From NCBI RefSeq assembly GCF_032062105.1, contig NW_026936150.1, positions 186,001 through 250,000 of the forward strand: a DNA stretch of 64,000 nucleotides, read 5' to 3'. Source of the stretch: Saccostrea cucullata. Its lineage: Eukaryota. How positions within the stretch are numbered: position 1 is the first letter of the stretch; every line of letters begins with the position of its first letter. The position numbers and the translations under genes were made by a program. Shown in pieces: positions 7,833 through 42,308 of the stretch. The notes beneath the pieces are model-generated. The model was given only the letters and a program-made list of their open reading frames with translations. It searched no databases and was not told where the DNA came from.

Positions 7833-10800
7833 ATGATGAAAAGCCCCTCCCCCCCCCATCAGAAACAGATTTCCCTCCCTATGGTAAGTCATAAGACTGT
7901 AGAAAGACATACACTGTCAAAGTGTCAACCTTCTCTATAAAGACGTGTGTTTGACCTTATCTAGGGCGATGGAACTTTTCCAACACTTAAGTTCGTAAAT
8001 TTTCACTTATAACGCGAGTCTATTATTAAAAACAACGCAGGTTTATCAAGGCATAATATCTTTTTGACAAAGTTTGCCAAATCTATTGTTATTTGCTCAA
8101 ATACTTAGGAGTTATCTGCCCATTTTAAGACTTTACATTATCACTGGTAGAACTACCCGTTATAAGAGCGCTTGACTAACACGGTAAACATTGTATTGAA
8201 CCAACTCAATGTTTTAATCAATGCTGGAATTTAGCAATTACGGAATTTATTTTTATGCGTTTAATATTTAATAACGTTTTGTGAATCTGCATGTTCCACT
8301 TTTAATACCCTATTAAATGGGTGTTAAATTACCGTAGCCTGTTGCTCCGTGTTCCGTGACGAATTACGAGTTAAAGAGATATATAACTTTTTGTCTTTTA
8401 GCCTATAGGGGATAATACGGTGCCAAAACAGAGGTTTGCGGACTACGGTTTGGGGGGTAAGTAGAAAAACGCCCTGGTAAAAGACAATTTAAGATTTTTC
8501 TATACTTTGTATATTATAAGATGTGAATATATAGATGAGCAATAAGTAAATTTGACAATACACATATTGTTTCCAGGGTTTACACAATAAATTGACCATG
8601 GTATAGATATACAGATCCTATCTCTAACCAGTCTGTGTAAAGTTTACGATGACAATATGTCTATTGTTTTAAATGTATGGGGTTAATATAGATCAGTCAG
8701 CAGTTATAAATTACTACAAGAAAACTAGAATCTTGTAATCCTCGAAACATAATTATTTTACCTTCGCATATTTTTTAAATGGAAATTTATTTCAGTATTG
8801 ATTTAAAAGGTATTGCAGTGTAGGCTTGTCTTCAGAACACATTTGCAAGCAACTGCATTTTTGTTATTTAATTTTCAATGAAAATCGATTCTTCAATGTT
8901 TTAAAACAATGAGAATGTATGATAATAATTTACTGGTTCTAGAATAATGGAAAGTAAAATAATTGCGCATGCGCGTTGCTAAGAATAAAGGTGTTCAGTA
9001 AAACATTCGCACACAAACTAACTTCAATATACTAACTTATTTTTAAGACAGCCTAAGAATTTTAATTCGATACAAAAATAGGTCAACCTAGACAAAAAGT
9101 TCTAAAAGAAAAGTTAAAAATTCGCAGTGTAAATATTTGCGATTGATTAGAAGTCAATCGCAGTGGAATTAAATTCCCGAGTGTAACGGATTTACTGTTT
9201 TAATGCTTGTATAAAGTACTTTAAGGAACTTTAAAGCCGTATATACTGCATAAAATATTAATAACAATCTTATCAATGGAAAAACAGTTACGTATTCATA
9301 GGCATTATCAAATGATGATAGATCCTATGACATGTAAAATAATGACGTCCCAAAGCATATTCTGTTATACATATACCCTTTACAGAGCGGCTGTTCAGTT
9401 CCCAACTTTTTTGCAGTGATCACAGAATTTGATAGGGTGATTTTTATCGCTCAATTTAATATCTTAAAAAAAACTCAATGTATATCATAAAATATTTATT
9501 TTGTAAAGTGTTGGTATTACATATTACATATCTCGATTCCAATCACGATATAACAAAATATAACGGTACATTGCTTCATATAACAAGACACCATCATAAA
9601 ACAATTTATAGTGTTGCCCTGACAAAATTCAAATTAAGAGTCCTTTAGAAGATTAAAACCTTGGACTGACGGCGAGAGTGTTTGGTCTTCTTTGCTCTAT
9701 AATGGGAGTCTTTATGTCAATATTAGCTACCAAGTTCTGATACCCTTAAAACCATAGGACGAGGAAAGTGTTAAATTTCTCATTGCAATAATCACCTCCG
9801 TGTCGGGTTGATTTTAGAACCTAATTGATCTGTAGCCATTTCGGGTATGTATTTCACATCGATCTCTCTTTTCTGTTTCTGGGAAGTTTGTTTTATAGCG
9901 GAAAACCTATAATAATAAAACTTTTTAATTATGTTTAGATAAATTCCTTGTGTGAACCCAGAACTTCAAATATATTAAGGACTGAAAGAGATGGGCTGTA
10001 ATTTAGGAGGACAAAAAATCGATTATTTTATCATTTAAAGAGGGTAGATGTAAAAAACAATGTTTACAAAGAACTTAAGAATCCTTAAATAGTAGATTAT
10101 CTGAGATCTTACGTAACAAATGGCAAACAGGGCTGTACAGGTGACAAAATAACACACATTTTATATAAATCTTCTACAAAGTAGAGTTCAGTAGAAATAG
10201 ATTTCAGTAGAATTGTGATAAGACTTACCAAATGTTTCTGTTTAAAGCGTAACTTTATCTTAAGTTGGTAGTCAACCAAGAATTTATACGTGATTTGGTG
10301 TGTGTATTATAAAACCATTCGATTAACACAAAATATAACAAATTCAACATAGAATTACTGTTATTTACTCATTTCCTTTTTATTTTAGAATGTGCAATGA
10401 TGTTTAAAAAAATTCCATGCATTTACCAATATACAATGTTCTGATTATTCTTAATGCCTAAGATTTCCCTCATAAACCGTTTATCTATTTAAAACCCTTC
10501 TTAATTCTCGATCAAATTCTGTCTTTAAAAGTCTTTAAATGATATTGACTTTAAAAAAAAAAATTTTCAGTAGCAACATTGTCTACTTTGAGAGGTAGAT
10601 TCCCACGAATTCCATTCGATGCCCCTCATACTTTTAATATAACTTTCTCAGAGCCCTAACTCTTTTTATTGGTCCATTTGTTTGTGTAGCGTTTAACCGC
10701 CCACTTTATGATACAATAAATGCCTTGATGCTCAGCTAATGTAACTTTTTATTATTTCAGGACAATATACGATGTTCAGTTAATATTACTTTTATTATTT

Positions 10801-12400: not shown

Positions 12401-15400
12401 GTAACTCACTTTTTTTATACTCACGTTGTTGTAAACCCAGAACTGTCACCTATCATATCCTGTAAATCTGTTTTCGTCATGTGAGCAAAAAGATAAAACA
12501 ATCCTCTAAATACCAAAGTTTGCAGTTCTTCATAATCTTAGATAATTGATAGTTTTCTTAGGATAACTTTCAGCCAAAGCTTATTTTCTGAAATTTTAAT
12601 TTTTTTCTTTCAATTTTTTGCATAGCTGCAACCAAGAATTTTGCACCATTTTTTGTAGTATTGTTCACAATTTAGTCTGTGTATCTTTATAATATGTACG
12701 TTGAAAACTAAAAAAATTCAATATAGCACATATCAGCACATCAATATATACTCCACACTTTAAACATTCTTATTTTAAAATGTAAAAAGGTTTATGATAA
12801 ACGTGATGACTTGAACTTTTTAATCGTCAATTTTCTTTACTTATGTAACAATATTATATTTTTATCACCTGCACATGGATTTGTGTGTCTCAAATGAGTC
12901 CAGAAGAGCATGCTCTACGTATGAATAAATTCTAGAAAGAAACAAGTTGATGAAACAAGGATGCCAACAGTCTTGTTTGTAGTAACCGTTTTGCAAGACC
13001 AATGAGCGATACAATAGCCTTATAAGCAAATATAACCTACTGTTAGGTCAAATGCTGACAGGCAATTTTCATACGAATTGTTTGACCATTATTTACACAC
13101 TTAATTGTCTACGGATTTTCTGTTTTCTCCGATCAAGACAAGGAGCACACGGCGGGTGTGACCAGTTGGCTGGGGATTATCACTCCTCTATAGTACTTGA
13201 TCCCACCTCTGATGTTTTTGCGGTACTCCTAATTTGCATTGTTTAAATAGACTCTGAATTTGAATACTATTCGTTTTCTCCGCATTTCATTGCTATGGAA
13301 ACCTTTGAAAGGTAGTCAAAGTCATAGTCAAAGTGTTTCTTGTGACTCTTGTCCGTAAAATGCAAAACCTCAAACTTACTTTGTGCAAATGTATATTGAT
13401 ATTCAATCACAGAAATCTTTTTTGGAGTTTATCAAATGTTAATACCACTGATTGTTTTAGTATATATTTATGTGTTTTATTTATGATACCACTATAAAAT
13501 TAATATGAAATATGCATACTTGAGACAGTGGTATTTAACAGATGTCAGATTTTATTGATAGTAAGTTTTATGTAAATTTTAAATTATCATGTTATTATTA
13601 TATTTCTTGCAATTTTTTCGCCAAATCTTATTTAAAGAATTTTTCCACCTAATGTCAATCTAATTTTCGTAAAAGAATTCGCGCCATTGAATTATTCACA
13701 ATACTGTGGACTTTTCCATAAAAACTCAATTTGTACGAGTATCTGGCATTGAATAATACAAAGATTTGAACTACATTTAAATACTTATTAACAAAGAAAA
13801 GGAAAGTGTTAAAAATGCACAAGTGTGAAACTGGACATAAATTGTACTTTTATTACATGGGCAAAGAAAAAAAAGTAGCAATAGAAAAAGTCTGCTAGTT
13901 CCTAGAGATTAGCTGTTTGTGTGTTTGTTCTCTTGTACACAAATGTTAAACCTTAATTGTAATTTGTAACAAATTATATTCATAATTATCAAAGAATGTA
14001 TTTTTTTCAAAGATTTAATTGTATAATTGATACAAAGGAGTTGGTTACAAGTTCTAACAACTTAAGAGATAGAAAAAGTCCATGCAGAAAATTGACGATC
14101 CTGAATATCTTCTATGCCATGCGATGTAGTTTCAAGAATATTTTCTTATCTTTTATTCCTTGAATTGTTTGCATTGCCTTTATTGCATATTCTATCAATA
14201 AACACAAGTTCTGTCATTTTCATCTAAACATTCGATGATAAAGAAAGTAAACCACTTTTGTTCTTACATTGATTATTATTGAGAAATTCAGATCAAGAAG
14301 ATAAATTATTTTTTACTAAATGCACGAGAAGTTTATTGGAAAGTAGAAAAAATATTTTATTTACTAAGTTGTCTTTTTTGTGCTTTTCCAGTATATGCAA
14401 CAGTCGACCTACAAGCATGACTTTGTGCCCGCTAATGGGGTAAGTTTGACTTTATGGAATGTTGATTTTATTCCTTTGTATTCCAGTATATGCAACAGAC
14501 AACCTACTCACATGATTACAACTCGGGAGGGGTATGTAATTCTTCATAGCACCGCTTCATGTTAAAGAGCTGGGCAAGACAAAAGTTGTCCATAAATGTA
14601 ACAAAAACGATGGGCTAAAGATATTGTCGCATTGCTCTTTGAATGCTGAAAATAGCTAAGATGCCCTTTTGTAGAAGGGCATGCTCCAGTTTTCTTTATT
14701 TTATGTGTGTATTGTAGTAGCAGAAACTTGACGATTTTTGCTTTTTATGTTCTAGAAAAAATTATCATTTTTAATTTCAATGAAAGTTTATTTTTCAATT
14801 AATACCAAAAGTATTTTTTATTTACATGTATGTAATCACATATTAGGTGCTTGTGGTATTAATTTAAAAGATATTGATCAATAATCAATTTATGAGATAC
14901 TTTTTGAAAATCAATCATATTCCTATTCTAATCTCCCAATTTATTTCTATTTGAAAATTTTAATAGATAACTGACAATTTCAATTAGGCAACAATGGTAT
15001 GCAGTAGGAATATTTATTGATTGCTTTTTTAATGTCATGGCAAGCTTCAATATTAACAAAAGTTAGAAGAGAATTCTATAGTTTCATAAATATTTCCCTA
15101 TCAACTTTCGTTGTAATTTTTTTTACAACGCGACCTAGTTAAGTTATTAAAAGGTTTTGTAGGCAGAAACCCTTACTATATAAATATTTGATAAATCATC
15201 ATCTTTATATTTTTTGAGTTTTATAGAGTAAATCTTAAGAGATACTTAGTATTTTGATGAGAAATCTGAAGGCATATTCATACATGTTTTTCTATCAAAC
15301 AGGGTCGGGTATGTATTTCTATTTCAGTACAAAATACCACTAAACAGTAAAACATTTCTTCTAGTGTGAACACACGACATATCTAATAAGAACATTTATG

Positions 15401-18400
15401 TATTTTGTGGCGTTTTAATTGTTTTAAAAGCATTTTTATTGTTTAGTCATGCTAAAGATTAATATATAAGCGTCAAAACCAATTAACAAAGGAATGGCAT
15501 GAATCCCAAATGGAATAAAACCACCAGAACTTCAATCAGAATGACATATTCCTCATTTTGAAGATAATTAATGTAAAACCTATTCTGAATCCTTTCTCCG
15601 GCTTGAAATCCTTAGTCACGAAATATCGCACAAAGCAGTTACATGTACAGTATCTCATTCATTTTAAGGACAAGGTTGATTTTTTTATTTGAAAGATTGC
15701 ATAAAATTGATCAAAATTTTTTTTCTGTTAATCCTTGACATAAAGATTTATAATTGTTATATACTTTAACTTTAAAAGATGAAAGAGACTACAGCAACAT
15801 TAATTCATTATGTCCGAAAAATCTTAAGTAAAAAATCAATGTACATAGAAAGCCAATATTATTCAAGCGGAATTTTATTTCTTTTTTAGATTTCTCCAAG
15901 GAACAGACAGACAAACTACCCATACGGAGCAGATGCACCCAAAGCCGACATTGCTCCTCCTTACACCAACTTCCGGCCACGATTCAGCGACCCTCTCCCT
16001 CCGCATATTAGAGATGTAACGAACCTTATTCTTATCTCTTTTAAATTTTTAATTGCTGAAGCACTCTAAGGAGCGCTGATGTAGATGGGCTTAATTTTCT
16101 ATTCCACTGAAAGTCTACTGACATACGATTTCTGTTCAAATGTTATGACATGGTATTTTTGCAGTTTCATTCAATTCCTTCTTTCTACAATTTGGTGAAA
16201 ATATTTCATGGATATAGCTAATAAGGACTTTCATCCTATAATTCCAATTATTCTGCATAATGTATTTCATAAACCTATCATCTTGAAATATATTGCAAAT
16301 TATGGGATTTTTAATTCAATTATCCAAAATATTCAGATGCTTGAACATAATGTAAGTGATTTTAATTTCTTTGGATGAGAAATGTTAAAAAAGATATATT
16401 CTAAATATTCATAAAAACACCACAACATGTATCATTTGCCACCTTTATATCTAATAAAATACAATATATGAAATAATCAAATCCTTCGGACTCTGTGGGA
16501 AACTTTCAGATACTAGTACGAATAGAGATATTCAGCTAATCCTATCCAATAATTTTAAAATACTAAAGGTATAGGTAAATATTGAATGTAAAAATTCTTT
16601 TTAAAGCAGTTCTTTTCTTTATAATCGAATGCTCAATTTAAATTATTTAAAACTGGGAGAAATAAGAAAAAATATGAATAAATATTGAATAACATACACT
16701 GTATATTCTTTGGATTCAATTCAAATATCAGTATCACAATTAAATAAAAATGGAAGCGTTTATTCTATAGAATTCTATAAAATCGTTTGAGAAAGTGTCA
16801 TTTCTTACCCTGAAACATTCGTTTTTGTAGCTGGATGGCCAGAGATATGATGATCAGCCCTTAACGGATAGGGTGAGTCAGTAGTGTGTGCCAAATTCCA
16901 AAAATAAAACTCCTGGTCTCAATTTCATGTTAACATTTATCAATCATAAACCTTGTTTTACATTCTGATACTAGTTATTTGTGCCATCTTTCAGCAAAGA
17001 GTCAAGAGAGGAGAAGAGTGGATAGGCGGGGTAAGTGATTTAACATTCCTGTCTTATGTTTTACTTTTTAAATTGCTTTAAGGGAAGTAACTCGTACTGG
17101 AATTAAATATCTCTTATTTTGCAGAGACGATACGACGAGCCCCTAACAGACAGAGGCGTAAGTTGAAATAACACATTTACAGCACAGTAAATACACAAAT
17201 ATATCATTTTATATTTAATAATCCCAATGTGAATTGATTACTAATAAATACTATAACTTGGGAGAAAGATATTACAGTTGCACCTGATTATAGGTCTATA
17301 TTCCACCTAGAAAGGTATGTTTAGTACAACTTTTTGCTCCTGCATCTTGTGCATGTCTTTCTATAGTTTGATTATATCATAATCTGTCCCTCTCTATTTT
17401 TTCTAGGCCAATCGTCTTTTAAAGTTTTATTAGTAATTCTATTGTCGATACATTGAACTTGTCAGCAAGTACGACCTATCATTTAGTCAAATGCTGACTG
17501 ACGTTTTTCATACTTATTGTTGGACCATAATTTACACGCTGTATTGACGACGTTTTTATCCTGTTATTTCCCGATCATGAAAAAGAGCTCGCGGCAGGTG
17601 TGATTGATCGGCAAGGGATGCTCACCATGCCTTGGCACCTGATCCTACCTCTGATGTTTTAGATGTCCGTGTTTGCTCTGCTCCTAATTTGTAATTCCAA
17701 CGGATTTTTGAGCTTGAATACTGTTCGTTATCGTCCCATCTTTTATTACAAAATGTGTCAGCTTTTTAAATTTTATTAATGTTGAGATATGAAAGTAATG
17801 AAAAAAATATGACAAGAAAGGAGAGAGGATTATCAAACAATTTTTATGAAAATTTTATTCCATTTACAAAATTTTCGAAATGATGATTATACTTTCAATT
17901 TAAAAAAAAAAAAAATATGGGTAATTTTTGACAAACAAAAATATTGTGCTTCAAGCTTTTAAGAAGTCGATGCTCTTTTTTGGATTGTTTACATACGAAC
18001 TATTATAACCTGTTGCCAAATATTTTAGACTTTTTAACAAAATAAAATTTTAAAGAGCAAAGCTACAGCTTATAACTTGAAGTCGTATTATAATTTTATA
18101 TCTTCTAACATTAATAAAACATTGCGGAATTAATAGTTTTATTTTACTTATAAAGTAGAAAACATACAAAGTATTTTTTTTAGATCAAGAACATAGTACA
18201 TTTTTCACTAAAATAAAATCTCTAGATATAAATATTTTAATTTTCTAGTTGCATGCAAGCACTAACACAAGTAGACAACACATTTACAATCAATTATATT
18301 TTTAAAAGATTTTTTAGTCCCATTAATTGTAGTAATGTTTTTCTGAATATATATGTAGTATTAAAACCAAACTAACAACTAAGCTAAATGTCAAATTTGA

Positions 18401-21400
18401 TGATGTTGACATCCATATTTATTTGGCAATATTTTGTTATGGACTGCTTAGGTTTAAGTCTCTTAACGTATTTCCAAGAACATCGTCTGTGCAAGATAAA
18501 ATAATTTGATTTTACAGTGTTTTTAAAAGTCTGCAAGTTTGCAAACTTAATGGTAATTAAAGTGATCTTATAAATATAACCAATGGGTCTAATTAGATTG
18601 ACATGGTTTAAACATTTTGTAAAGTTATTTCTTTTTATAAGAGATTACTTCGTTAACTTCACTACAAAGGCCAAATATGACTGGTGAGATCAGACAAAAT
18701 CGGAAGTTTACTCCTATAATACAAGTGATTCCATTTCTTTTGTTTTAAGAGACCATGATCTCGATATGTATTTGTGAAATTGTTTACTCTTGGTTGTTCA
18801 TAGTTTAAGATTAAGTTAAACCAAATCCCTTTGTACTCCTTTAATGTTTCACTTTACTAACAGTTTCCTTCTCTCTGCAGCAATATTATGAAAGGGATCG
18901 AGGAAGAGATATCTCACCAAATAGGGTAAATATCGCTTATACTGAACAGCCTTCTGAAGCATTGCTTTCACCTATATACATTTTAGTTAGATATCACTTA
19001 TTGAACAGGCTTCTGAAATATTGCTGTCACATATGTAGGTTAATATCACTTCTTGAACAGGCTTCAAAAGTATTGCTTTCACCAGTGTAGTTAGATATCA
19101 CTCAATGAACGGTATTTTAAAACATTGCTATCACCTATGTAGATAGATATGACTTATTTTAAAAGCTTCTCAACTATTCTTTTTATCTGAGGGGATAAAT
19201 TACACAAAATTCTAAAATATAGCTTTCCCCTTAGCCTGTAGGTGTCACCCAGTAAAGAATATTACAGTAGTTCTTAACGTTCTGAAGTTTATAATATTTC
19301 ACAATCTGTGACTGATTGTCTTATTACAGAAGACTTAGTTCTCAAAGCATTTTGTAATTTTTTTTATTTATTTGAAAGAGAAACAAAAAAGCTAACAAGT
19401 CAGTGGTATGTTAAGTATATATAAAGGATAATAGGAGGGTGATGAAGCAATATTTTATTTTCAGAGAGATGATAGAATGTATAAACCGGAAGATGGTCGA
19501 TACACCTCATTGGATAGGGTATTCATTGTTCATGTCTTTAATCTTAACAACCATAGAGTGACTAAATGTTATATATTAAATGAAAATTTTTACTTCGTTG
19601 GTATTACCTAGAAAGTTATTGTTCATAAAAAAAACAAGAAAATGTAATTGTCTTTTAAGAAGTAATGCACGATATAAGCGTAATTATATATCTAATAAAA
19701 CTTCCATCTGTGTACAGATACATGTTAGGAACAGACATAATAAGTTCCTTTCAGAGTTTAAGAATATGACATATCATTTTCAGAGAGATGACAGAATGTA
19801 TAATATACGGGACGATGGTCGATACACGTCACTCGATAGGGTACTGTGTCTATGTGTCTGTCTGTGACTATCAGTAGATTGCTTGATTGCTAACAACAGT
19901 TTAACCATGTCTCTATTCATATTTACAAAACCTGAGTATTAATCTTGTATTTTCTTTTCATATTATTTACCGATATAATTTGCCTTCTTGCAAAAAAAAA
20001 ACAATAACAAAAAACAGACACACAATCTAGCTTTGTAGGTCTTATAAAACTATTAATCAACACATAAAAACAGAAACAATCATTAAATGACAAAAATATA
20101 CACAGAAAATATTTTCAGTTTTAAATAGGAAGCAATAATTAATAAACGAATCATAATTATATGATAATGTGAATTAAAATAGCATAAAAATATAATATTT
20201 CACGCAATTTTAATATACTTTTAATTACCTTTTTTCCTTTTCTTCCAGCAAAATCTGAGGTTGAGACGACACGCTTCACTTGATAGGGTATTAAGTAGAT
20301 ATATATCTTAAATGAAAATATAATTAGACTGCTTATGTTTGAATTATACAGAAATACTTCATTTTTGTGCCAAAATTGTATTAAAAAATCGTATATCAAC
20401 ATTTAAAGTGTTGTAAAAATATGCACAATTAAAAGTTGAAGATAAGTATTTTTTCCAATTATTTTGAATAATGATATGAGATTTAAATTTTCAACAGATT
20501 AAATTACTTATCGAAAATATTCAATCTTCCAGTATGATTTAATGGATAAACGGAAAGAAAACCTAAAGCAAGTACGTTTTCCTTTATTACAATTTAAAGT
20601 GTTTAAATCTTTACAGTTCGAACTTCCAAAACGAAGAAATGCAAGTATTAAACACTTTTTCAAAAATGTTGAATAATGAACTAAAAATATTAAATAGGAT
20701 TAACAAGGGATGTGTTATGGTCAAAAGGGATAAGAAATTTATAACCAACTAATGATAAAATTAGACATAACATATTTATAACTGCAAAAACTTGGTTTCA
20801 GTACATCGCAGATAGGCGGAGGGGGACAGATGAGGGAAGGGTATGTGCGGTGCCAGCTAAACTGTGTTACTAGTATTTCATTCTTTCACACAAGAAACGC
20901 CACGAAAGATTTTTTTCACACTCTGCTTTTATCTGCTTTTAATTAGTTTTGTTATATGTTTGTTTTCCTTTTCAGCTTAATCCAATAGAGCGCTTTTCTA
21001 ATGCTTGACATTTCAGCTTCTTTTACAACACCTGCTTGATCTACATCAATAGTTGTATTATTTCTCTGCTTCTTGCCAGGAAAAGTCTCTTTGAACATGC
21101 TGATATTTGAAGTGGTTTAAAATATAATCAATTGTTTGATTAACTATTGTTATTTTTTTCAGTACCAAGACAGAGGAATGAACGGTTCCCCAGAACGGGT
21201 AAGAAATATATAGATTTACTTCCTATTTGGAAATTAAACTGAAGGAATGAATCGTCTAAATCAAGGTAAATTAAATTGTTTTAATGTTTCATCTGACCTT
21301 TTCTTGCAGTATTACGATAGAGGACGTGACCTTGACCGAGGTCGAGGTTATGACAGAGCTAGGGACGGATCCCCCAGCAAGGTCAGTTGTTTTGATGGAG

Positions 21401-22402: not shown

Positions 22403-22482
<80 letters not shown>

Positions 22483-25400
22483 CATTTTATCAACTATGAG
22501 TGAATATTAAATATGTATATTCTGATAAATCATAGTAAATTTTGTGTAAATATCCATCCAATGTTTTTCCTTAGATTTAAACTTTCTTTCTGAATCTTTC
22601 CTTCTACTCACTAGTATCTAACATTTAGTATACATGTACCTTGTGATTTCCCTGTACAAGTAACCTCTCTGTACATGTGACTTCTCTGTATTGTCTGCTC
22701 TTAACTTTCACATGTGACGTCTTGTGTTTACAGTATTATGATGCATCACGTGATAAATTTAAATATCCAGACTGGGTATGCAAATCAATTTAACACCTAA
22801 CTGTGTTACATTATTAACAATCTTATAAATTTTCATACATTTATGTGATTCACAAAATCTAGTTAATTATAGATTATATATTAATATTTGTCATCAATTT
22901 ATAATCACATGTTTTGTTGAATAATAAAAAAGTGATCATATTCAACATTACACTATATTTTAGATGGACTTGACTTAGCAATACATTAGTTTTAGTTTAA
23001 GCTTCGGTACAATATAATGTCATTTTTGTTATACGTAGCTAACATCTGCATCATTGTGTGGATTTAGCAGAATATGAGGTTTTCTGGCATCAGATTAACA
23101 TAACTAAAACTTATACAGTGCACTACAAAGTTCACATAAAACATAAAATTTAGATGATTTTTAAAAGATCACAATTTTTAAAAAATTTTCTGTAGCAAAA
23201 CTATTTAGATTGTAAATTTTTAGCAATGGGTTCTAAAATACTTCCTTTATCTTAAATTCCTTTAAATTGCATGAAAAAAAGTTTCTTTTTATTTTTATTG
23301 CAAGAATATAAATGATAATGAATATGATTTATGATCTTATAAGATTAAGGTTAGATTTGTATTATGACGCTTATATATGTTTCTTTTCTTCAGTACGAGC
23401 AGCCAGTACAGCCCGGGATAGAAAGTTACGCGGACCACAAGGTCAGTCAAACACCACGGAACCTTTGACTTATGTTTATGCTTATGTAAAAAACGTATTG
23501 TAGGTACTAAAATGTTTGGAACTATAAGAATAATTTTTTTTCTAAACTAGAAAATGGCCGACAGAACAACCTACAAGGATTATGGGGAGGTAGGTTTTTG
23601 TGCATAATTTCTTTCACTATATTCATATGAAATCAAAATTTTCAATAAACCTACTGTATTATTATTCAGTTGTTTATACATGTATGTTTCAGTTTCTACA
23701 AGAAAAAATCAAAATGGAAGAACTTCGAAAGGTAATGATATTTCACTTTGATAACTGGAAAGGTTTTTATAAATCACTTTCCTCAATTTCCTTTAAAATG
23801 AGCTCTAACACAAGTTGATATAATAGCAAGAAAGCAAATCAAAGGAATAAAATAAAATTAAAGTATTTACACTTATTATCTGTGATTACACCATAGAGCT
23901 AAATACATACATTAATCAAAGCTCATGTCTTTCTTTAAATTTTTTAAAGTTGTCTCTCTTTAACTTTAAATGTCCGTTAAGATATTCTTACTTTGGTCAT
24001 TTGTATAGCACGTAATTTGTGAAATATTTGCGAAGATTACTTGACGTTAATTTCAATATAATTTTTCAGCAACCTTTGGAATATCCTGCAGCTAATCTGG
24101 TGAGTGATTATGAGTTTTATTATTGTGCATTTTAGGTATGATGAGCAGTACGCTTTTGTTTAATAAATTAAATCAAGATCTCTTTTTCACTTTGTATTGA
24201 TCCAATCATTTTAATTTTGGGGTTTTCTATTAATTTGTTTAAACGTCTGAAACAGAATAAAGGGATGTATATTTGATGTATATATTTACAAGGAGAAGAA
24301 ATATTAAATAATTTATTTTCAAAGTTTAGGGGAGAACAAATGATTCAAACACCTAATCATATATAAATTAGGGATACTTTATTTTCTAAATATTCTAGCA
24401 AAATGTACATGATTTAATACATTCGATAAATTCCAGCACTTAAATTCCAGCAAAAAATAGATATCAAAGCAGCCTTCGAAAAATCGATCGGTCTTTAACT
24501 GAAACATTAAAACAGGAGAAAGGTTTTAACATGGGTTTTGGTACCTAAAATAACTTAAAAATCGATAATGATTGAAAGAAATATTGCGCTTTTGATCAAA
24601 CGTCAATACTTCTATCTGTTTGTTTACTCCTGAACATGCGTAGACATCGTTAAAGCTACGAACAATTTAAATGTGTTTCAAAAGTCAACGGCGCTTTAAC
24701 TTGAATGGAGTGTAGGCAAAGTACCTGTCACTTTACATTAAATTTGATTTAATTTTCACGAGGCCCAGATATTTCTGAGATGTGTTTGCTTTTGTCGGGG
24801 ATTGAGTAAGGTATTAATGGATGTCATCATAGTGTGTCTTTTCTCGTGATTCATTGTCAATTTCAAAAGTAGACTCTGCTCTATTGTTGACACTCTGTAA
24901 ATCGGATCACATGGCTACCATAGATCCTCTGCGATACACAAACAGCAAGCTAGATACGGTGGAAGCGGGCATAGAGGTTGTGAAAGCAAAAGTGGGACTG
25001 GTGGACGAAAAAGTCGGAATAATGGCGGAGGACTGGAAGCTGTATGGCCCGAGAATCAATGCGCTGGAGGATAACATCCATTACCATGACACAAAGATGG
25101 ATGAGTTCAATACAAGAGAAGGGATCCACTCTGCCAAGCTTAGAACTCTAGAGGAAGAATTATCAAAACTCAGAGCACAAAACAATCGTCTCCAGGATGA
25201 GCTACATGTAATGCATAAATCACCTAGGTTTGTCGAAGATGATCGCGAAAAGCGAAAAAATAACGCAACTAATGATAAACATGATAATGAAAAAAGAAAT
25301 GTGGATTTTCAGAAGGGACAGCTGAGCCACAGAGACACCTATCGGGAGCAGATGTACGGACCGGACAACGAGAACAGGTATTACACCAGGGACAACCAGC

Positions 25401-28400
25401 GGTTCTCAAACAGAGATAGGGAAAGGGAACTGGAGGCCCAGATTAGACGGGAAATGGGGAAAATTGAAATGCATGACGGGAATTTCAAACCATGGGGAAG
25501 AGATGCTTATCAGAATCCCTCACATCATCCGGTAAGATTGCATCATGGACATTTGCTGTCGTCTGCTTTTTAACAACGACGTCATTGTTTTTGTAGCAAT
25601 TTCATCGTATATCCGTTTAGCCATTTCATTCTTTTCATGTAGTTTAGAGGGCAACATGGACTTCAAGATTTTTCAAATGGACAATCAGAGCCAATTTGGC
25701 TAAATGGATTGGATTTCAGAAGAGTTTTCCTTCTCTAAAATTGACTGCTATGGAAATATATCTTCTCTTCACATATCATTCAATAAAATTTCAAGCGCTC
25801 ACAGCCACAGGGAAAGTAAACTAAAGTGGAATTCCTAGGTTGCCTTAAAACCAGTGTACAGGTTAATGCAAGGAGATTTGGATGGATGATACAAAAGATA
25901 AATATTAGCCATATCTTAGTTTCGTAAGCGCTAGTTGATTTCCTTTTATTGATACATGGACCGTTAATCACCGTTTGATTATTTTCTTTACGTGGTCGTT
26001 GTCATAGCATGATGTACCTCAATGAAAAGATCCTTTGAGAAAATTTTCTGAGCGAGCTTACAATACGATTGAACTCCATTTCAGTCCGAGGAAGAAAATT
26101 ATATGCGTTTTCTTTGTGTACATTCGTTTCCAAATCCGCGTAAAAATCAAACACAAAAAGATTTATTAACATAACCGACGATATAGCATTATGCTTCACA
26201 CATTTTGATGATAAATTTTTGCAGAAGTAAAGGCAAGGCACGGAAGTTAACAAAAATTATAAAACAGCAATTAAATTCTTTAAATCAAATATCAAATAGC
26301 AGTAGAAATGAAAAGAAGATCTTTATATTTTTGTTCCTTTAGGGGATATTAAAATTCGTGATATTTTATGCACTTCATTCATATGTTTGTATAGAACTCT
26401 TTCAAGCTTACATGCAATTATTTATTTCAACCTGGTCTTGGTTCCTTTAGAATTTTATATCAATACTGCCTTTACAGGTTTCACTATTGATTTTACGTGG
26501 TATCTTTTATGAGATTTAGCTTGATATTGGATCTGTCTATCGATATCCCAAGTAATCGATACGGCTTCCATTTGTAGGGCCCTAACTATGTAAATGACCG
26601 CTACTTACGCCCAGAGGAGCGCCAGGTTTGATTCTTTTCGTGGGCTTATGTTCTTTACACGTCATCTGTATATAATCTCAGTCATTTACTCATCATCTCA
26701 GTCATTTATCCATAAATCATTTCAAAAAAGGCTTAATTTAGAAACATTTATATAAAAAACATTTTTGTTTCATATTCCATATCGTTTATCACGCATCTTC
26801 ATTATGCTTTGTGCAGGTTCGTTTTTTCGCATATTCATCAAGTGTATGCTTTATTTCACGAATGCTTGTATTCAGAAGTACTTTGTCGACGTTATTTCTT
26901 TGAAATTTGAATGCACAATTTTTGGATCAGTTGCAAAATTATTCAACATTTCTTCTTAAGAGAACTGAAAGTAAATCATGTCTGTGTGGAGTGGTTGTTG
27001 TAAACAGTTTGCATTGTGATGTCTTTTACTCTGAAAGTTTTTCTATTCGTAATTTACTAATTTATCAAGTGGAGAATCATATTTGAAATTTGAATGTTTA
27101 AAAAGTATGATTTTTCAGTTACGACATCAACTGGACTACGACAAGTCTCCTGTGACTGAAAGCAAACCCGAGAACCAGGTTTGTCACTGAAGCCCAGCTT
27201 AGGTGTTGTGACCTGTACAATTCTCCTCAAAACAATAGCATACATTATTCAGATCATTCAAAGTGCATGTTGGTGTGATTAAAGAAAGCAAGACCTTGCT
27301 TTTACCTAATTAACAGATATATTTTTGGATTTTCTCAGGCACCATGTTTTTTCTTTAGTGTTGAATTATAAATTCTTGTTTGAGAACATTTACATACCTA
27401 CGTTCAAAGAAGCAGGTGCCCTTGAGTAACCAATAAATGCAGTATAAATCAAATAAATCTTTATTTAGACAAACTTCCTATCATGTTTACTCACCTTACA
27501 TTCTCATTTCTTCCACAATCTATACAAATAAGACATATAAGGTGTATTGACATTGAATTTAATTCTGCAAGCGATACAATGTCATATATCAAAATGAGTC
27601 CAATAAATACATGACCGTCTTAAATTGAATGTTACATATCTTACTCTGTAAAAGATTTCACATTTTTTAACAATTAAAATTGACATCTTTTTCATTATTC
27701 TCTGTCTCTTTGTTCATTTTCTCCGGTTATACTCTTAAAAATCAGATTTAAGCTAAGTAAATAAAATAAGAATGGTGTTCTAGTGTCTGCATTAAATATT
27801 CTTGTAGGATGTTAGGCCCCAGACTGAACCAGCCCTTCCAATTCGGTCTGATTTCGAGGTATATAATCCGTATCATCGTGTGACGCTTTGGTACACAAGG
27901 ATGAATCTATGAACTGTCATGTTTTTGTGTGTATGGTTCACGACGGTTTTGCACTTGAATCAAAGTATAAATATATTCATTGTGTACTTTCCAAACTCTT
28001 GAGCATCAAACTGTATATATATTTATTTCTAGCACATCGGGTATCACCGGGGCGTGTGCCAGTATATTGTATGCATCTGTATAGGAATGGCGTGTATACA
28101 GAACAAATTATCAACATTGTACCTTTATTTCTATTGATATGTTTTGCAGCCCAAGTCTACCAACAGTGGTGTCTACCTCTTTGTCAGAACCAATAAACTC
28201 GCCAAGGCTGATGTTGTTAAAGCGCTTCAGGAGGGACGTTCTGTTCTCGCCAACTCGTACGGACAACTCAAAGGCATCGCCACTAGTAGAGAGGTAGGCC
28301 TTACTTCAGTATCAAGACATAGATAATTAAGGTACATTGGTGTGATTTTGCAAGCAATAATGCATTCCCAAGTTACTGGACGAAATACTGCTGGAAAAGC

Positions 28401-31400
28401 TTACTATAACACTTACCGCGATTTCGAAAATGCTGCGACATGGTCTAAATTCACGATAAATTTTGGCTTCTTGAACAGGTTGGTTTTTATTCATAAAAAA
28501 TCATGTTAACAACTTCAAAATTAATGATATGATGCGACTGCTTTAAGACTGGTTAAATTTCTTCAACGTCGCAGCATTTTCATCCAAAATTTATCGTGTT
28601 TTTCGTGTTTTTGACCATGTCGTGCTTTTTCGAAAGAAAATAAAAGAAGACAGAAAATGGAGAGTGTGAGTAGTTTATCTATCATATATGTAAATATAAT
28701 TGACAGTGAAATATATAACGATCTGCAGATTTAACCAAAATTTTCTTTTTTCTTTCAGATCAATCTTTTAGAGGGCCGCGCCGATGGATGGACACACAAA
28801 CCATCGACAGAACCCAACAAAGTTTGGGATATCGATGATATAGTGATCATCGTCTGGTTCCCGACAAGCAAGGAAGCGGAAATGTGGCTTTGTCACGAGA
28901 AACACTTTCGGAACGCATCTTTTCCAGAATTCTATGGGTCAGACATTGTTGTCTTGCCGATTAACTGGAACCCAACAAATGGTAATTTGATTCTGATTAT
29001 GATTAACATGTATTTCATTTTATTATATTATTAAACTTTAACAGAGAGAAAACGGTTCCAACATTGTTAAAATTAAAATATTTAATATCATTCTCTATGA
29101 TTCTTTTTAGATCGCCATTACCCTACATTCTTAGTGACAGAATACGAAGGAATCGTTGATCCCGATCAATTCAGGGAAAAATTTGTCACGAACATGAATG
29201 GCGTTTTGCAAAAACATAAAGCCGAGCGTTTTGTCATCCAGACAGTGGGGATCAAAAATCTCAGAGGAAACTGGTTTAAGAAGAGGAGTGTGGTTACATG
29301 CAATAGGTTCCCTTCCAGCGAAGCGGCCTACCAATTCTACAACGATCGTAAGTACAGAAGAAAGTAGTCAGGCAAATAGCCCGCCTTTGCTTCTCTATGC
29401 TATTTCAAGTTTACTGGACAAATTTGACCAAGTTGTTGAGTAACAACTTTCTTCTGTTTCAGCTGAATACGAGAACCTCAGAAGATCATTGCGGGACATA
29501 TCTAAAAATAGAACCACTGTAATGTTCACTCTAACAGAACGTCCTGTGTGATCACGTGACACTGGGATCGACTGTTGCCAAAAACACTCTACAAAGTCTG
29601 TGATATTTTTAACACATTGGATACGAACCTGTCGCCTGGTAGTTGTTGCGAATGTAACTTCTGATCAGTATTATTCGGGAGTAGTCAGCTTTAACCCTTA
29701 CATTATTCTTGTCTTTTACATTTTATTTCCATGAAAAAAAGGGTTTAGGAATAGAACGAAAACTTACAATAAATATCGCTAAGAAATAAAACAAAACATA
29801 GTTCAGATTTATATGTTCTAGTTAGAGTATGTGTAAATATATATACAACACATACAAAGGAAGGCTTCCTGTTAAAAGATCTATGGTTTGTTTTAAATCG
29901 TGTAGTCTTTTGCTACAATATTGAGAAATAACTCTACTAAACTTTTATACTAATATTCTTCCAACCTTTCATAGAGTTTCATATTTATATATTTTACATT
30001 TCATTTCTTGCACCTGTGTAAATTATTTATTTTTCACTATTTATTTGCTGTATGTATTGGGAAGGTATTCTTGAATAAAAGAATAAAAACAGTTAATCAT
30101 GTTTTTCTTGTTAAATTGTATACAATCATAACTTTATCGATTTTTATCACCAAATAATTTAATTTTAGTTGTAACCCGTCAGTTGATTGGGTAAAAGATT
30201 TAATCCATTTTGTATAACGTAAGTTGCCTACGTCACAATGAGTTACGTCAAAAACGTATTACTCCGCTTGACGTTACTTTTAAAATTTGCTGAATTTGAA
30301 GCCTTTTTCTGGAGGAAAAATTGTCTCATTGTCAACACTGAAATTAAATTATATTGGGGCGGTTTACGCTTTTTATATTCCGCTTCGGGGTTTATAAAGC
30401 GTAAACTCCCCCAAGTTATGTCATATCGGATAACATAAGTTGAAATAAGCTTCATTCCTTAAATACTGAGTAAGCATATGACATATACAAGTATTTAAAA
30501 CAAACTGTATTTTGGCCAGCTTCAGAGATATTTAAACATACCAATATATGGTAATATGACCTTTCAATTTTTATAGACTTGCTGTTCTCCATATCAAAGC
30601 AGGCCATCTATTGAAATAAAACATTTACCATATTGAAATAATTACTTTTATGTGATAAAAAATATCTATTTTTTTTTTAAAGCAATTTTTTAAATCGACA
30701 TAACATCATGTTATAGGATATTTGGATTTAATAATATCTTTTATTATATGATAGAATAATTTCCATCTCTCCGATTGGCTGAGATCCAACTATGTTAGAA
30801 AAATACTACGTTGTATTGACCTGCACGTGACGTTCCAGGTCAATACAAGGATTTATTTCCTCTACATTGATCTAAAAATAGATTGGGAAATTCCAAATTG
30901 ATACAAATTGATTTGGAAAGCTATTTAAACTACTATAACTTTTTTTTTCATGTGAAGAAAACATAAGCGAATATATATTTTCGGGTGAGGATGGTAAGAG
31001 GGGATGCAGGGACACTCCTCCAACACCTTTACTGAACAACAATTTTTACTTTTTGGCAGTCAGTTTTCCCTGATAATACTCCTTCCATTAAAAATCTATC
31101 CTAGAAAAAAGACTGACATTTTTTTTTCATGGCAACAAAAATTGATTAAAAAAAACTTTAAAAAAAATAAATACGACCTGTAAGGTTGATTAACATTTTA
31201 ATTCTGCTTCTCTCTTAATTGTATTTGGATAGGACTTAATTAAATGCAAACAAGTAATGGTTTTATCATTTTATTAGTGAATCATATAATAAAACAATTA
31301 TTGCTGTTTTTTTCAAATGATTTAGCCATCTTCGAATACAATATCACCTCGCCCTCCGGGCTCGGTGAATATTGTACTCCTCAGATGGCTAAATCATTGT

Positions 31401-34400: not shown

Positions 34401-37400
34401 GCTTATCAATTCAAATAGAAGACAAACTCTGTATGCAGTGATATTGCATAAGGGTATATTGCTGCATAAATAAGGGAACTTGGCAATACAATTGTTAAAG
34501 TCTTCACCTTATCATTAAGTAAATATTCAATTTAGTGTTAAAACAGATTTGTCAGACTCTGTGGTGTTTAAATTTTGAGTTCATAGGGATACATGGAATC
34601 AACATAGGAATGAAAATGAATATTTTTCGTCAGTAGAATATCGTCGCTATATTAAAATATTTAATTGAAGGCCATAGCGAAGTGCTTTTTCATTCCACGC
34701 AGAAGGCGTTTTAGGAATTTTCTCCTTTACATGAATACAAACATACATCTGCAAATAATGAATCGCAATAAGTTCCCATGGAAATTCTGACAAATTGTTG
34801 GAAACTTGATTTAAAGTATAGTACAAAGATATTGTCAATCATAAACCCAACCATCTTTCGAATAACATTTTGAGGCCAATAAGTGTATAAACCGAATGTT
34901 TTAATGTGAATAAACTAGTTCCATTTAAAGAAAACAATATTCTAAAATGATTTTGGTAAAATTTGGTGATTGTTAATAAATCCACGAATTAAGATCCTCT
35001 TTAACAATAGCCTTGTCAAAGTATCGTGAAATACTAGTAATGTCCCCGCAAATTAGCAAAAATGTTTTGTTCAGAAATATCTTATTCGCAGATCAATATG
35101 AATTCACGTATCATTCGTTATTTTTTACATTTCTTTGAAAAAGTAAATGTAAAATGGTAAAATCTTTCTCTGATTAAGTTAAGTTAGATGTGAAGCGAGG
35201 AATAACGAAAAGACAAAACATTATTTTCCGCTTTGCCATGTTGACAAGAAATTGGTAAGACCTGGTTAGCAATGCCACGAAACAGAGAGCTTTGCTTTTG
35301 CAAATTATTTTTTATATTAAAAAAGTCAAGCTTGAAAAGAAATGAATGATCGTGCATCCTTCTGCTTATTTTTACCTTTTTATCAAAACTGTTACTAGAA
35401 GAAAACACTTGCTGTGGCCTTCAACTTGACATTTAGATATATCGACGACGCATTGTCAATTAACAATGGTCATTTCCATTCCTACGTCGATACGATATAT
35501 CCTGGTGAGCTTGAAAAAAGATACGACAGAGTCTGACAAATTTGTTTCGTACTTGGATATTTGACTTGAAAAAGACTTTAAAGGTAATCTAACAACCAAG
35601 CTATATGATAAACGTGATGACTTCAACTTTTCTATCGTCAACTTCCCTTACTTATGCAGCAATATACCTTCATCACCTGCATACGAGGTCTATATATTTC
35701 AGTTGATTCGATACGCAAGAGCATGCTCTATGTATGAACAATTTCTAAAACGAGGTAAATTATTGATAATTTAACAAGTTGATGAAACAAGAGTATCAGC
35801 AGTCTCGTTTAAAGTCATCATTTCATAAGTTCCATGATACAATGACCTTGTCAGCAATACAATTTATCATTGAGTCGAATGCTGACTGACGTTTTTCATA
35901 CCAATTGTTAGTCCATTATTCATACACCGAATTGAGACGGATTTTTCCGTTATTTCACGATCATGACAATGAGCACACGGCGATTGTGACCGGTCACATG
36001 GGATGCTCACTCCAGCATGGCACCTGATCCCACTTCTGATGTTTCGGAGGTCCGTGTTTGCTCTGCTCCTATTTTGTATTGTTTTATGGACTTTGATATT
36101 GAATACAGTTTGTTATCTCCATATCCTTCTTCCAAGTAACAGCTAGCTTAAGAACATTAAGGGATACAATGTATCTGTGTTATGTCTTTATAGATTCAAT
36201 TGCTGGAGGGAAACGAGGGTTGGGATATCCATGCTCACATCACACGCACCGGCGACTACTGGTTAGAGCAGTCCCGAGAGTCCACAGAAATCAATGACAT
36301 CATCATCGTTATCTGGTTCCCGACCTTTAACGATGCGGAGAAATGGGTCATCAGCGAAAAGCACTTCAAGATCTCTAACTACCCTGACCCGTACGGAAGT
36401 GACGTTTTAATCCTGCCGTTAAATGATAGTCAGCCTCAGGGTAAGGCTATTTTGTGAGAGAGTGATAGCTAATGATTTAAACTAAGCAATTCTAGAAATA
36501 AAAATATATTTTCATTAAATTTTCTCTGTTTGTTGAGCTTAATAAGATTATAATTTAGCTTCCTTCTTTTCAAAGTAAAAAATATTTATTACCTGGAAAA
36601 ACAATTTCGTTCTCTACAGAATTTTGCTGCAGAAATCTTGTTTTATAATAAATGACCACAAGGTCCGTTCAGTCTAAAGTTTCTTAGCTATAAAAAAAAT
36701 TTAAAGGAAATATTTTTGTCAAAGATTTCAAATTATATATTCATTTATTTTGATTATGTATGTATTTGACAGAGAGGATAGCGTACACGTACTTAATGAC
36801 GGAATATCCACGGACAATGGACTCGGATCATTTCCGTGACGTCTTTGCTCCTAGGATTCGGGCTCTACTCCAGAAGAAGTACGGTATAAATGAGTTCTTC
36901 ATCCAGTCTGTCGGTGCCAAAGTGATCCGCGGGAGCTGGCTTAAAAACAACAGTATTGTCACCGGCATCCAGTTTCGGAACCGGCGGGAAGCCCAGGATT
37001 TCTTCTTTGACCGTAAGTATTTGACTTTATACGTGTATTGGTTGATCTTCTTTGGCCGGAAGTATTGGACTTGATACGGTGTATTGGTCGAGTTAGTGTG
37101 ACTTGTTCACAAAATTACAGTTAGTCCGCAAGTTTCAAATTAAATATAAGGATAGCGCTGATTTTTACAATACTTATTCTGAAAAATCAAAATGGCCACT
37201 CAATACTCAAGTATCCTCATCATTCTTTTGCTTTTTTGCTTGCATTACTATAAGATAGAGCTATGGGAATGCTTAATTCCCCCGTTTTTTTGCAATAAAA
37301 GTATCACGTTCTTTTGGCCGTCTACAAAATGAAATAAATTACATTGAACAGTTTTAATATATGATTATATATTATTAATAATTTTCTTTAATTTTCAGCT

Positions 37401-37511
37401 GAATATAGGCAAATCCGCCAGGACATTCACAGACGCATCGAAAACCTTCCGTTTTATACTAACAGGTTCAAACCGGTTAGTTTCCTGTTTACCTTGGATG
37501 CTTACGTGTAA
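7833..37511 (+). CDS. Modular microexon gene: low-complexity Y/R/D/G-rich N-terminus plus tandem DUF1330-like domains (overall span; modules listed separately)
   Basis: About 35 exons bounded by pyrimidine tract-AG and GT. From 14392 to 28293 every exon is a multiple of 3 and open in phase 0. The C-terminal exons translate to ...FPSSEAAYQFYNDPEYENLRRSLR, which resembles the DUF1330 consensus FPS.EAA.AWY.SPEYQ. The 5' end is less certain. Confidence 0.75.
10727..10856 (+). repeat. ~44-bp tandem repeat x3 containing the splice acceptor of exon 10848-10877
   Basis: gatgctcagctaatgtaactttttattatttcaggacaatatac repeated with few changes. Confidence 0.9.
12790..13290 (+). mobile_element. Penelope-like 3' fragment (intronic)
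   Basis: ttatgataaacgtgatgac...ggagcacacggcgggtgtgacc...tcccacctctgatg. Confidence 0.75.
14392..24099 (+). CDS. Array of phase-0 microexons: 14392-14439, 14487-14531, 15303-15308?, 15890-16015, 16831-16872, 16995-17030, 17125-17157, 17294-17314?, 18881-18925, 19465-19518, 19784-19840, 20249-20287, 20533-20571, 20802-20840, 21163-21198, 21310-21381, 22202-22252, 22734-22775, 23394-23441, 23551-23589, 23693-23731, 24070-24099
   Basis: Short GC/purine-rich islands in AT-rich introns, all with AG...GT, lengths divisible by 3 and no stops. Peptides include YMQQSTYKHDFVPANG, LDGQRYDDQPLTDR, RRYDEPLTDRG, QYYERDRGRDISPNR, RDDRMYKPEDGRYTSLDR, YQDRGMNGSPER, YYDRGRDLDRGRGYDRARDGSPSK, FREYDQGRNAYNGYNDR, KMADRTTYKDYGE. 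Confidence 0.8.
17410..17745 (+). mobile_element. Penelope-like 3' fragment (intronic)
   Basis: Conserved 3' motif ...gggatgctcacc...ggcacctgatcctacctctgatg...ccgtgtttgctc. Confidence 0.75.
18926..19200 (+). repeat. Degenerate ~52-60-bp minisatellite (about 5 units)
   Basis: Recurrent atatcactta(t)tgaacaggcttctgaa.tattgct.tcacc. Confidence 0.75.
22409..22478. repeat. (GA)n microsatellite
   Basis: Pure GA run. Confidence 0.98.
24911..25531 (+). CDS. Large coiled-coil exon (MATIDPLRYTNSKL...NPSHHP, 207 codons), probable alternative first coding exon
   Basis: ATG at 24911, heptad-like LRTLEEELSKLRAQNNRLQDEL, phase-0 donor CCG|gtaaga at 25531. The nearby AGs would enter in phase 1, so no phase-0 acceptor is evident. 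Confidence 0.75.
26578..28293 (+). CDS. Shared exons 26578-26625, 27119-27178, 27808-27858, 28150-28293; the last begins the first DUF1330-like repeat (GVYLFVR...GQLKGIATSRE)
   Basis: All phase 0-0 with canonical splice sites: GPNYVNDRYLRPEERQ, LRHQLDYDKSPVTESKPENQ, DVRPQTEPALPIRSDFE, PKSTNSGVYLFVRTNKLAKADVVKALQEGRSVLANSYGQLKGIATSRE. Confidence 0.8.
28422..28635. mobile_element. Fold-back MITE-like inverted repeat
   Basis: ttcgaaaatgctgcgacatggtctaaattcacgataaattttgg versus ccaaaatttatcgtg...gaccatgtcgtgctttttcgaa. Confidence 0.6.
28759..29551 (+). CDS. C-terminal cassette A (exons 28759-28981, 29111-29347, 29463-29551): completes tandem DUF1330-like domains
   Basis: INLLEG...IVIIVWFPTSKEAEMW / FLVTEYEGIVDPDQFRE...LRGNW...VVTCNRFPSSEAAYQFYND / PEYENLRRSLR...RPV*. 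Phases 0-1, 1-1, 1-stop are consistent. Confidence 0.85.
30745..31432. mobile_element. Possible non-autonomous Crypton-like element remnant
   Basis: 5' attatatgatag...gattggctgag and a 3' hairpin caatatcacctcgccctccgggctcggtgaatattg...aataattgtataat. The family assignment is from recall only. Confidence 0.35.
32920..34670. mobile_element. Two Penelope-like fragments tail-to-tail (32920-33510 +, 33710-34670 -)
   Basis: RT-end and 3'-motif matches on opposite strands. Confidence 0.7.
34013..34286. mobile_element. MITE with ~50-bp imperfect TIRs nested in a Penelope-like fragment
   Basis: tactattgtttgcagctaactgtaaagtttcacattacttcacgatct versus agatcgtgacgtaacgtgaaactttacagtcgactgtaaaacaatagta. 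Confidence 0.8.
35402..36120 (+). mobile_element. Penelope-like 3' fragment (~720 bp)
   Basis: FRYIDD...LYDKRDDFNFSIVNFPYLCSNIPSSPAY and the 3' motif gagcacacgg...ccgtgtttgctc. Confidence 0.85.
36194..37511 (+). CDS. C-terminal cassette B (exons 36194-36440, 36773-37012, 37399-37511): paralog of cassette A, DUF1330-like
   Basis: IQLLEG...IIIVIWFPTFNDAEKW...YGSDVLILPLN / YLMTEY...IRGSW...QFRNRREAQDFFFD / PEYRQIRQ...FTLDAYV*. Intron positions and phases match cassette A and the frames are intact. Confidence 0.85.

Positions 37512-42257: not shown

Positions 42258-42308
<51 letters not shown>

Follow-up and report, generated by a model that had tools for sequence, protein, structure and literature searches.

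The DNA analysed here (the window) is a stretch of 64,000 nucleotides (nt) of the oyster Saccostrea cucullata (assembly GCF_032062105.1, contig NW_026936150.1, positions 186,001 to 250,000, forward strand), and the region under study, window positions 7,833 to 37,511, was identified as LOC134244914 by comparison of RefSeq isoforms with the window exons. For this purpose a profile of the two middle ending exons was searched, which gave bivalve proteins among the matches listed, and 18 of the at least 24 RefSeq isoforms were split without remainder into window exons. The parts recognized in a sequence-only reading of this DNA were recovered, namely a small-exon array, an ATG exon at 24911-25531, exons between 26578 and 28293 and two parallel 3-exon endings (A and B), with all junctions up to 28293 in phase 0. 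RefSeq isoforms from six oyster species, together with de novo RNA contigs, back one transcription unit with two starts, a variable tail and alternative endings; these isoforms are already in RefSeq, labelled 'uncharacterized', and the literature search returned no relevant paper on the gene family. Homologue searches of limited reach gave bivalves only.

RefSeq lists 24 to 40 or more isoforms per oyster species, and the numbering of orthologue isoforms reaches X32 in Crassostrea virginica, X40 in Magallana gigas, X37 in C. angulata and X23 in Ostrea edulis. RefSeq models are built on aligned RNA reads and usually differ by single events, so that the number of isoforms says nothing about abundance, and how the events combine along a full-length transcript is uncertain. 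De novo RNA contigs of Magallana from public runs, whose exons align with the window exons, contained three of the four start and end combinations: small exons with the shared exon and A (contig P0154, four runs), small exons with B (P0136 and related contigs) and coiled coil with B (P0152 and P0267, three runs). Two of the four runs of P0154 belong to the C. gigas developmental-stage libraries listed in PMC9118643. In C. virginica two locus identifiers (LOC111133666 and LOC144617525) lie on one chromosome with near-identical isoforms, and may represent a recent duplicate or an uncollapsed haplotype.

The 3' part of the gene consists of the following features:

28150..28293, + strand: sole shared exon, in every isoform, single copy in the genome
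28759..29551, + strand: ending A, exons 28759-28981, 29111-29347 and 29463 to the stop at 29551 (RefSeq X9 and Magallana contigs)
36194..37511, + strand: ending B, exons 36194-36440, 36773-37012 and 37399 to the stop at 37511 (17 of 18 isoforms), with phases as in A

Both endings are intact, comprise three exons each and share 39% protein identity; the second exon of the endings occurs in exactly two copies in the genome. Compared with Ostrea, both are under purifying selection, B being the faster (non-synonymous divergence, dN, 0.31 vs 0.16 for A). Ending A has its own AATAAA signals from 29768, and contig L008 connects ending B to the shared exon. Each of ~160 oyster isoform sequences carries exactly one ending. 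Neither the separate transcription units nor the one invariant isoform that the sequence-only reading had named as incompatible with it were found, as judged from the RefSeq isoforms and from junction-spanning de novo contigs. The start of B lies 6.6 kb past the stop of A and an ab initio annotation of the pearl oyster (Pinctada) detaches the upstream array, as would be expected if B formed a gene by itself, or were a partial duplicate that has died, and if the array belonged to yet another gene; however, B is intact, is under purifying selection and has no separate exon for the first half-domain (the gap between A and B contained no paralogue of the shared exon), and 139 isoform sequences as well as de novo contigs connect it to the shared exon. 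This explanation is barely credible.

The endings were compared across bivalves. In Pinctada three endings of three exons each come after one shared exon, and every one of them has its own stop and is entered through a phase-0 acceptor; in trees, Pinctada ending 1 grouped with A (87/87) and endings 2 and 3 with B (93/93), and separate duplication in each lineage was rejected by the approximately unbiased (AU) test (p-AU 0.022 and 0.007, quick tree). Sequence comparison thus places the partial gene duplication before the split of true and pearl oysters. In mussels the whole gene is present as two paralogues, and each paralogue combines a shared-type exon of its own with a single ending; the second DUF1330-like gene of Mytilus californianus is arranged tail to tail with the first. 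The scallop locus has one ending. An open frame of 1,419 amino acids (aa) was observed within the intron of Pinctada ending 1 (contig L007, 20871-25130, - strand).

The shared exon encodes the first strand, the first helix and the next strand of a ferredoxin-like domain 1, that is half of this domain, so that the ending swap cuts within a domain. Shared exon plus A and shared exon plus B were each modelled as two ferredoxin-like domains (predicted local distance difference test scores of 85 and 83); from these models, each ending would supply one and a half domains and would fold incompletely if alone. The swappable DUF1330 C-terminus proposed earlier is therefore borne out as a swap of two endings and revised as to its unit, which is not one domain. 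With the Pfam cut-off for DUF1330 (PF07045) at 23, the second domain of the A isoform scored 33.6 bits and the B isoform 18.5, and the first domain had no match. Best structural matches were tandem alpha-beta barrel proteins at ~10% identity (2pgc: Z 14.4, root mean square deviation 3.9 over 194 residues), and a structure atlas contained a cluster of 208-aa tandem-DUF1330 proteins, mostly from flatworms (template modelling score 0.75). A sequence search of the PDB gave no match. The same tandem fold is present in ovorubin, a protein of apple-snail eggs (PDB 9uaj; Z 9.1), which hints weakly at ligand binding. A haem enzyme was rejected, since the alignments lacked the invariant histidine. No signal peptide or membrane helix was found in a simple window test (best 19-residue hydropathy 1.2 or less). 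The disordered tail in front of the domains is composed of 14% Arg, 13% Asp and 10% Tyr.

The 5' part of the gene, up to the last small exon, was resolved as follows:

7970..8399, + strand: conserved non-coding block, 69% identity to Ostrea over 450 nt; the Magallana 5' untranslated region (UTR) matches 8209-8269
10848..10877, + strand: exon ending with the start codon, ATG at 10869 (Met-Ser-Tyr), MSY start in 18 of 18 isoforms
11246..11263, + strand: 18-nt optional microexon (RefSeq X4), of the same size in Ostrea
12371..12400, + strand: 30-nt optional exon, in 15 of 18 isoforms
14392..14531, + strand: duplicated, mutually exclusive pair 14392-14439 / 14487-14531, with a 47-nt intron between (48 nt in Ostrea)
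15890..17314, + strand: exons 15890-16015, 16831-16872, 16995-17030, 17125-17157 and 21-nt microexon 17294-17314 (isoform mapping, Ostrea comparison)
18881..20840, + strand: exon 18881-18925, then 19465-19518, 19784-19840, 20249-20287, 20533-20571, 20617-20640 and 20802-20840 (isoforms)
20533..20640, + strand: second exclusive pair within this block, 39 nt / 24 nt with GC donor, 45-nt intron (Ostrea: 44-nt intron and GC donor)
21163..22775, + strand: exons 21163-21198 (always kept), 21310-21381 and the co-skipped 22202-22252 / 22734-22775 (isoforms)
23394..24099, + strand: exons 23394-23441, 23551-23589, 23693-23731 and 24070-24099; last three in 158 of 158 isoforms, two with pearl oyster homologues

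Conservation suggests that block 7970..8399 holds the probable promoter of the small-exon class together with its 5' UTR exon. A coding start at 7833 had been assumed; segment 7833-7883 (+ strand) is used in none of the 18 isoforms and has no match at the Ostrea locus, and translation starts at the ATG at 10869, upstream of which Magallana contigs carry an in-frame stop. A 43-bp tandem repeat in three copies at 10727-10855 triplicates the acceptor of the start-codon exon and could yield alternative 5' UTRs. Two further non-coding blocks upstream of the start exon (8944-9206 and 9590-9803; 71-79% identity to Ostrea) are possible regulatory elements or UTR exons. Candidate exons at 9386-9436 and 15303-15308 (6 nt) were rejected, being used in no isoform.

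The array appears as short AG/GT-bounded, GC-richer segments amid AT-rich introns, and after the start exon contains 24 phase-0 small exons of 18-126 nt, mostly 30-51. In a phase-blind splice-site scan, 12 of 14 array candidates were symmetric and open in frame 0 vs 3 of 38 controls from the other strand and flanking DNA (Fisher p 2e-7). The idea of a microexon-built N-terminus was right as to an array of small exons, but three true microexons had been overlooked (11246-11263, 17294-17314 and 20617-20640), and none of the other 21 of the 24 exons is as short as 27 nt. Sizes correspond nearly one-for-one with those in Ostrea edulis, from which the small exons differ by dN 0.144 and a synonymous divergence (dS) of 0.79 over 300 codons (dN/dS ~0.18). 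Mussel and scallop orthologues have all-phase-0 small-exon arrays of their own, and Mya isoforms differ by short in-frame blocks. UGC motifs, as known from neural-type microexons, were not enriched upstream of optional exons. Exons 19465-19518 and 19784-19840 are recent duplicates with a single Ostrea counterpart; their joint inclusion is possible.

Use of these exons was counted in 158 small-exon isoforms. One and only one exon of pair 14392-14439 / 14487-14531 was present in 158 of 158 (68 vs 90); in the second pair 20533-20571 was found in 93 isoforms, 20617-20640 in 9 and both together in none. The introns of 44-48 nt inside the pairs point to steric exclusion. Exon 15890-16015 was always included, whereas the block after 18881-18925 was skipped in six states among the 18 S. 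cucullata isoforms and is entirely missing from de novo contigs. Choice is thus constrained, with two exclusive pairs, five small exons without any skipping and the others dropping out blockwise. The earlier proposition that any exon subset keeps the frame stands for the phase-0 junctions, but not every subset is made, as the exclusive pairs demonstrate. Likewise, of the proposed multiplication of two N-termini by many combinations by two C-termini from one locus, the single unit, both start classes and both endings were retained, and free combination was not.

Two explanations of this variability were weighed here. If the gene were a diversity generator resembling Dscam or micro-exon genes (MEGs), with free random exon choice giving thousands of variants for recognition or immune evasion, all small exons should be symmetric, as they are, and many isoforms are indeed listed per species; the observed S. 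cucullata block states multiply to 1,728 at most, vs ~200,000 for free choice. The five small exons that are never skipped, the skipping of others in blocks, the low dN/dS, the lack of signal peptide and membrane helix and the convergence of de novo contigs from separate runs on few short forms all argue against it, and we regard it as very improbable. Alternatively, start and ending choices may be real and most small-exon skipping tolerated noise in a disordered tail, with few working isoforms. Symmetric exons in a disordered region are cheap to skip, RefSeq includes rare junctions and the contigs are mainly forms of 426-457 aa. However, the optional exons hold size and sequence across genera, the same blocks and exclusive pairs occur in Saccostrea, Ostrea, Crassostrea and Magallana, and all-phase-0 arrays are kept in the mussel and scallop orthologues. 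Noise of this kind, which is compatible with the gene structure preferred below, is a minority possibility at about one chance in four.

Each exon of the first exclusive pair encodes one unit of the form [TS]-[TS]-X4-[YF], which fits the Mn motif of microtubule inner proteins (PMC10973386). The unit is kept in oysters, mussels and scallop and is missing in clam orthologues and in coiled-coil forms. The loose published pattern also appears in 14-48% of shuffles, the stricter pattern was picked after data inspection and Pfam SAXO/STOP gave no match, so that the microtubule link is a lead, not a finding. Microtubules or cilia are, tentatively and at less than even chances, the best lead from sequence for the protein's place of work, and its function is possibly connected with them.

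Between the array and the shared exon lie a hybrid exon and linkers:

24911..25312, + strand: 134-aa coiled-coil part of an exon that serves as first or internal exon (hybrid exon), included only when transcripts begin at the inner start (three Magallana and one Mytilus RNA contig)
25313..25531, + strand: 3' part of the hybrid exon, 219 nt, optional internal exon with internal phase-0 acceptor, in 15 of 18 isoforms
26578..27858, + strand: three optional linker exons 26578-26625, 27119-27178 and 27808-27858, mostly skipped (first in 23 of 158 isoforms)

The coiled-coil exon, which is single copy in the genome, had been described as lacking a phase-0 acceptor; one exists at 25313. Both uses of the exon, as first and as internal exon, were seen in Magallana and Mytilus. 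The open frame from the upstream ATG through the 25313 acceptor is kept in Ostrea, Mytilus, Argopecten and Pinctada, and the coiled-coil part differs from Ostrea by dN 0.145 and dS 0.82. From products in relatives we infer an inner promoter or start site near this exon. Structure atlas matches to the coiled coil scored below reliable level. Within the 3' part, at 25453-25495, the motif IE[LM]H[DE]GNFKP[WY] is kept in oysters, mussels and scallop amid variable sequence. Where four shared exons had been counted, 26578-27858 are three cassettes and only 28150-28293 is in all isoforms. The Argopecten orthologue (contig L015, 33067-37933) contains, between hybrid exon and domain, a further array in which repeated exons of 66 nt and 24 nt alternate.

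The intron between the shared exon and A contains blocks near-invariant among Saccostrea, Ostrea and Magallana, the remainder being diverged:

28421..28467, + strand: conserved intron element D, with a 13-nt core at 28426-28438 identical in Saccostrea, Ostrea, Magallana and Pinctada
28531..28636, + strand: partner arms from pairing calculations, 28569-28581 (exact complement of the core), 28584-28636 (long stem with D) and 28531-28538 (can mask the first arm)

The stem of D with 28584-28636 was calculated at -49 kcal/mol vs a background of -14 +/- 4 (fold z -4.4); in the alternative pairing, the core GAAAATGCTGCGA binds 28569-28581. The 13-mer and its complement recur in the orthologous Pinctada intron, where two partners likewise compete; none of 20,000 shuffles produced the 13-mer. 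Neither 13-mer nor complement is present in the loci of Mytilus gene 1 and Argopecten, the second mussel gene being only partly in view. In contig L006 the A exons are spliced and the intron before A is retained. Rfam gave no match for the element, and its origin as a transposon remnant was rejected, D being single copy in the genome (the copy count is a lower bound). Control of splicing by D would follow from its position and distribution only.

The block could instead be a protein-binding site, an editing stem or a small RNA host unconnected with the choice between A and B. This would suit a 13-nt pair that is invariant and without compensatory change, the lack of a selector near B and a comparison of only four genera. 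Its position exactly between the shared exon and the first ending, its occurrence only in species with duplicated endings, the two competing partners in each, the single copy without Rfam match and the retention of just this intron in contig L006 are less easily accommodated, and we hold such a role to be possible, with odds of roughly one in three.

Taken together, the locus very probably represents one conserved bivalve gene in which four ordinary splicing devices are stacked: starts, blockwise skipping, exclusive pairs and duplicated endings. The product would be intracellular, with two ferredoxin-like, DUF1330-like domains that are preceded by either a coiled coil or a disordered tail (Arg/Asp/Tyr/Gly). 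An upstream start feeds the small-exon array, and a presumed inner promoter makes an internal exon into a long coiled-coil first exon, whose products are seen in relatives. Regulated blockwise skipping of symmetric small exons, seen in gene models and contigs, may tune the tail. In the exclusive pairs, whose exclusion is observed, the 44-48-nt introns are presumably too short to splice. Partial gene duplication gave two 3-exon endings, each completing the fold begun by the shared exon: if the proximal acceptor and poly(A) site are used, A results, otherwise the transcript would continue to B, and the competing RNA pairings in the intron before A probably set the A/B ratio. The most likely purpose is to adapt a scaffold or ligand-binding protein to particular tissues or stages rather than to create random diversity. 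A more specific proposal, that a competing-pairing switch arose with a partial duplication in the ancestor of true and pearl oysters, has remained unchanged since, decides between the split-domain endings and acts in concert with the choice of start and small exons to give cell-type-specific ciliary or microtubule-binding versions, is unlikely to hold in all its parts.

Several results weigh against this interpretation. No coiled-coil plus A product was present among RefSeq isoforms or de novo contigs, and none of the oyster RefSeq models returned has the coiled-coil start. As evidence, RefSeq models and short-read contigs are stronger for junctions than for the phasing of whole transcripts, and the support joining Pinctada ending 1 with A is only 87/87. 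With regard to the switch, covariation gave no support, which an invariant core pair is unable to provide, and neither around ending B nor around cassettes 2 and 3 of Pinctada did the search for a selector of D give anything above noise. With no partner near B, the layout is not that of docking site and selector as in PGRP-LC; A being turned on or off, with B as fall-back, fits better.

In this gene, two starts, small-exon skipping and two ancient duplicated endings can give dozens of protein versions. The coiled-coil start, conserved from oysters to scallop, is missing from the RefSeq models mentioned. Two routes to the same diversity can be compared, since in oysters and pearl oysters only the 3' cassette was duplicated and the first half-domain is common to the copies, whereas mussels duplicated the whole gene. 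As the RNA element is present on the cassette-duplication route only, the origin of RNA-pairing control of 3' cassettes becomes testable outside insects; if the switch is true, mussels, with whole-gene duplicates and no element, are a natural control.

Around the gene, a VWA7-like gene at ~39600-52000 (- strand; VWA7_N 42721-42939, VWA_4 40425-40754) is directed towards it and also follows the Ostrea orthologue. Inside the span of this neighbour, at 44700-50000 (+ strand), lies a broken Gypsy-type long terminal repeat retroelement, in which fragments of the reverse transcriptase, the RNase H and the integrase zinc finger occupy different frames. The exons found at 53177-57605 (- strand) probably encode a membrane protein, which has a stalk rich in Thr/Ser and pieces rich in Cys and gave no Pfam match; a run of N occupies 357-501 of the window.

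Each of the splicing devices is known, but they seldom occur together in a single gene; the literature searched described neither this combination nor the split-domain swap, the contrast between oysters and mussels or the conserved pairing, and contained no paper on such an RNA switch in a mollusc. The likeness to MEGs and Dscam suggested earlier did not survive comparison. With Schistosoma MEGs the gene shares a long run of very small symmetric exons that are skippable in frame, and in-frame skipping variants occur. MEGs have signal peptides, are mostly microexon-coded and fast-evolving and are reported only from flatworms (PMC4350168), whereas the oyster protein has no signal peptide for secretion, contains a folded module of 230-250 aa coded by long exons and is under purifying selection, without raised dN/dS; exons of 36 nt or less code for 86 aa and those of 51 nt or less for 258 aa of a protein of ~640 aa. 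Dscam1 likewise has mutually exclusive duplicated exons and conserved intronic RNA pairing, but in clusters of dozens as opposed to two pairs whose exclusion is presumably explained by short introns, and the oyster protein has neither an Ig domain nor a membrane helix. Sterically exclusive pairs, with a short intron between exons that are never joined, describe both oyster pairs (47/48 nt and 45/44 nt). DUF1330 and dimeric alpha-beta barrel proteins (PF07045; PDB 2pgc, 3mcs, 5f9p) have the tandem ferredoxin-like fold in common with the oyster protein, but identity is ~10%, the alignments contain no invariant histidine for haem and the oyster protein has a long spliced tail; a shared fold shows no function. 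A possible likeness to MAP6/SAXO proteins (PMC10973386) lies in the Mn-like unit on the first exclusive pair, which oysters, mussels and scallop carry close to the N-terminus, as a single unit rather than repeats. Of 236 human tandem duplicated exon substitutions, 77 are C-terminal swaps, which form the most enriched class (PMC9741552); as in the C-terminal swaps of tropomyosin, homologous exons are used singly, but an entire 3-exon unit of 180-200 aa is swapped in oysters, with three copies in the pearl oyster and whole-gene duplicates in mussels. The closest model is the duplicated 3' variable region known from Drosophila PGRP-LC, pipe and CG42235 (Pan et al. 2018, PMC6191721). In these genes, as in the oyster, a common 5' part is joined to one of several duplicated, homologous multi-exon 3' cassettes with their own stops and ends, and conserved intron elements form competing pairings; they have a docking site and a selector before each cassette, whereas all oyster partners lie before the first, and the oyster swap point splits a folded domain of an intracellular mollusc protein and is combined with a small-exon array.

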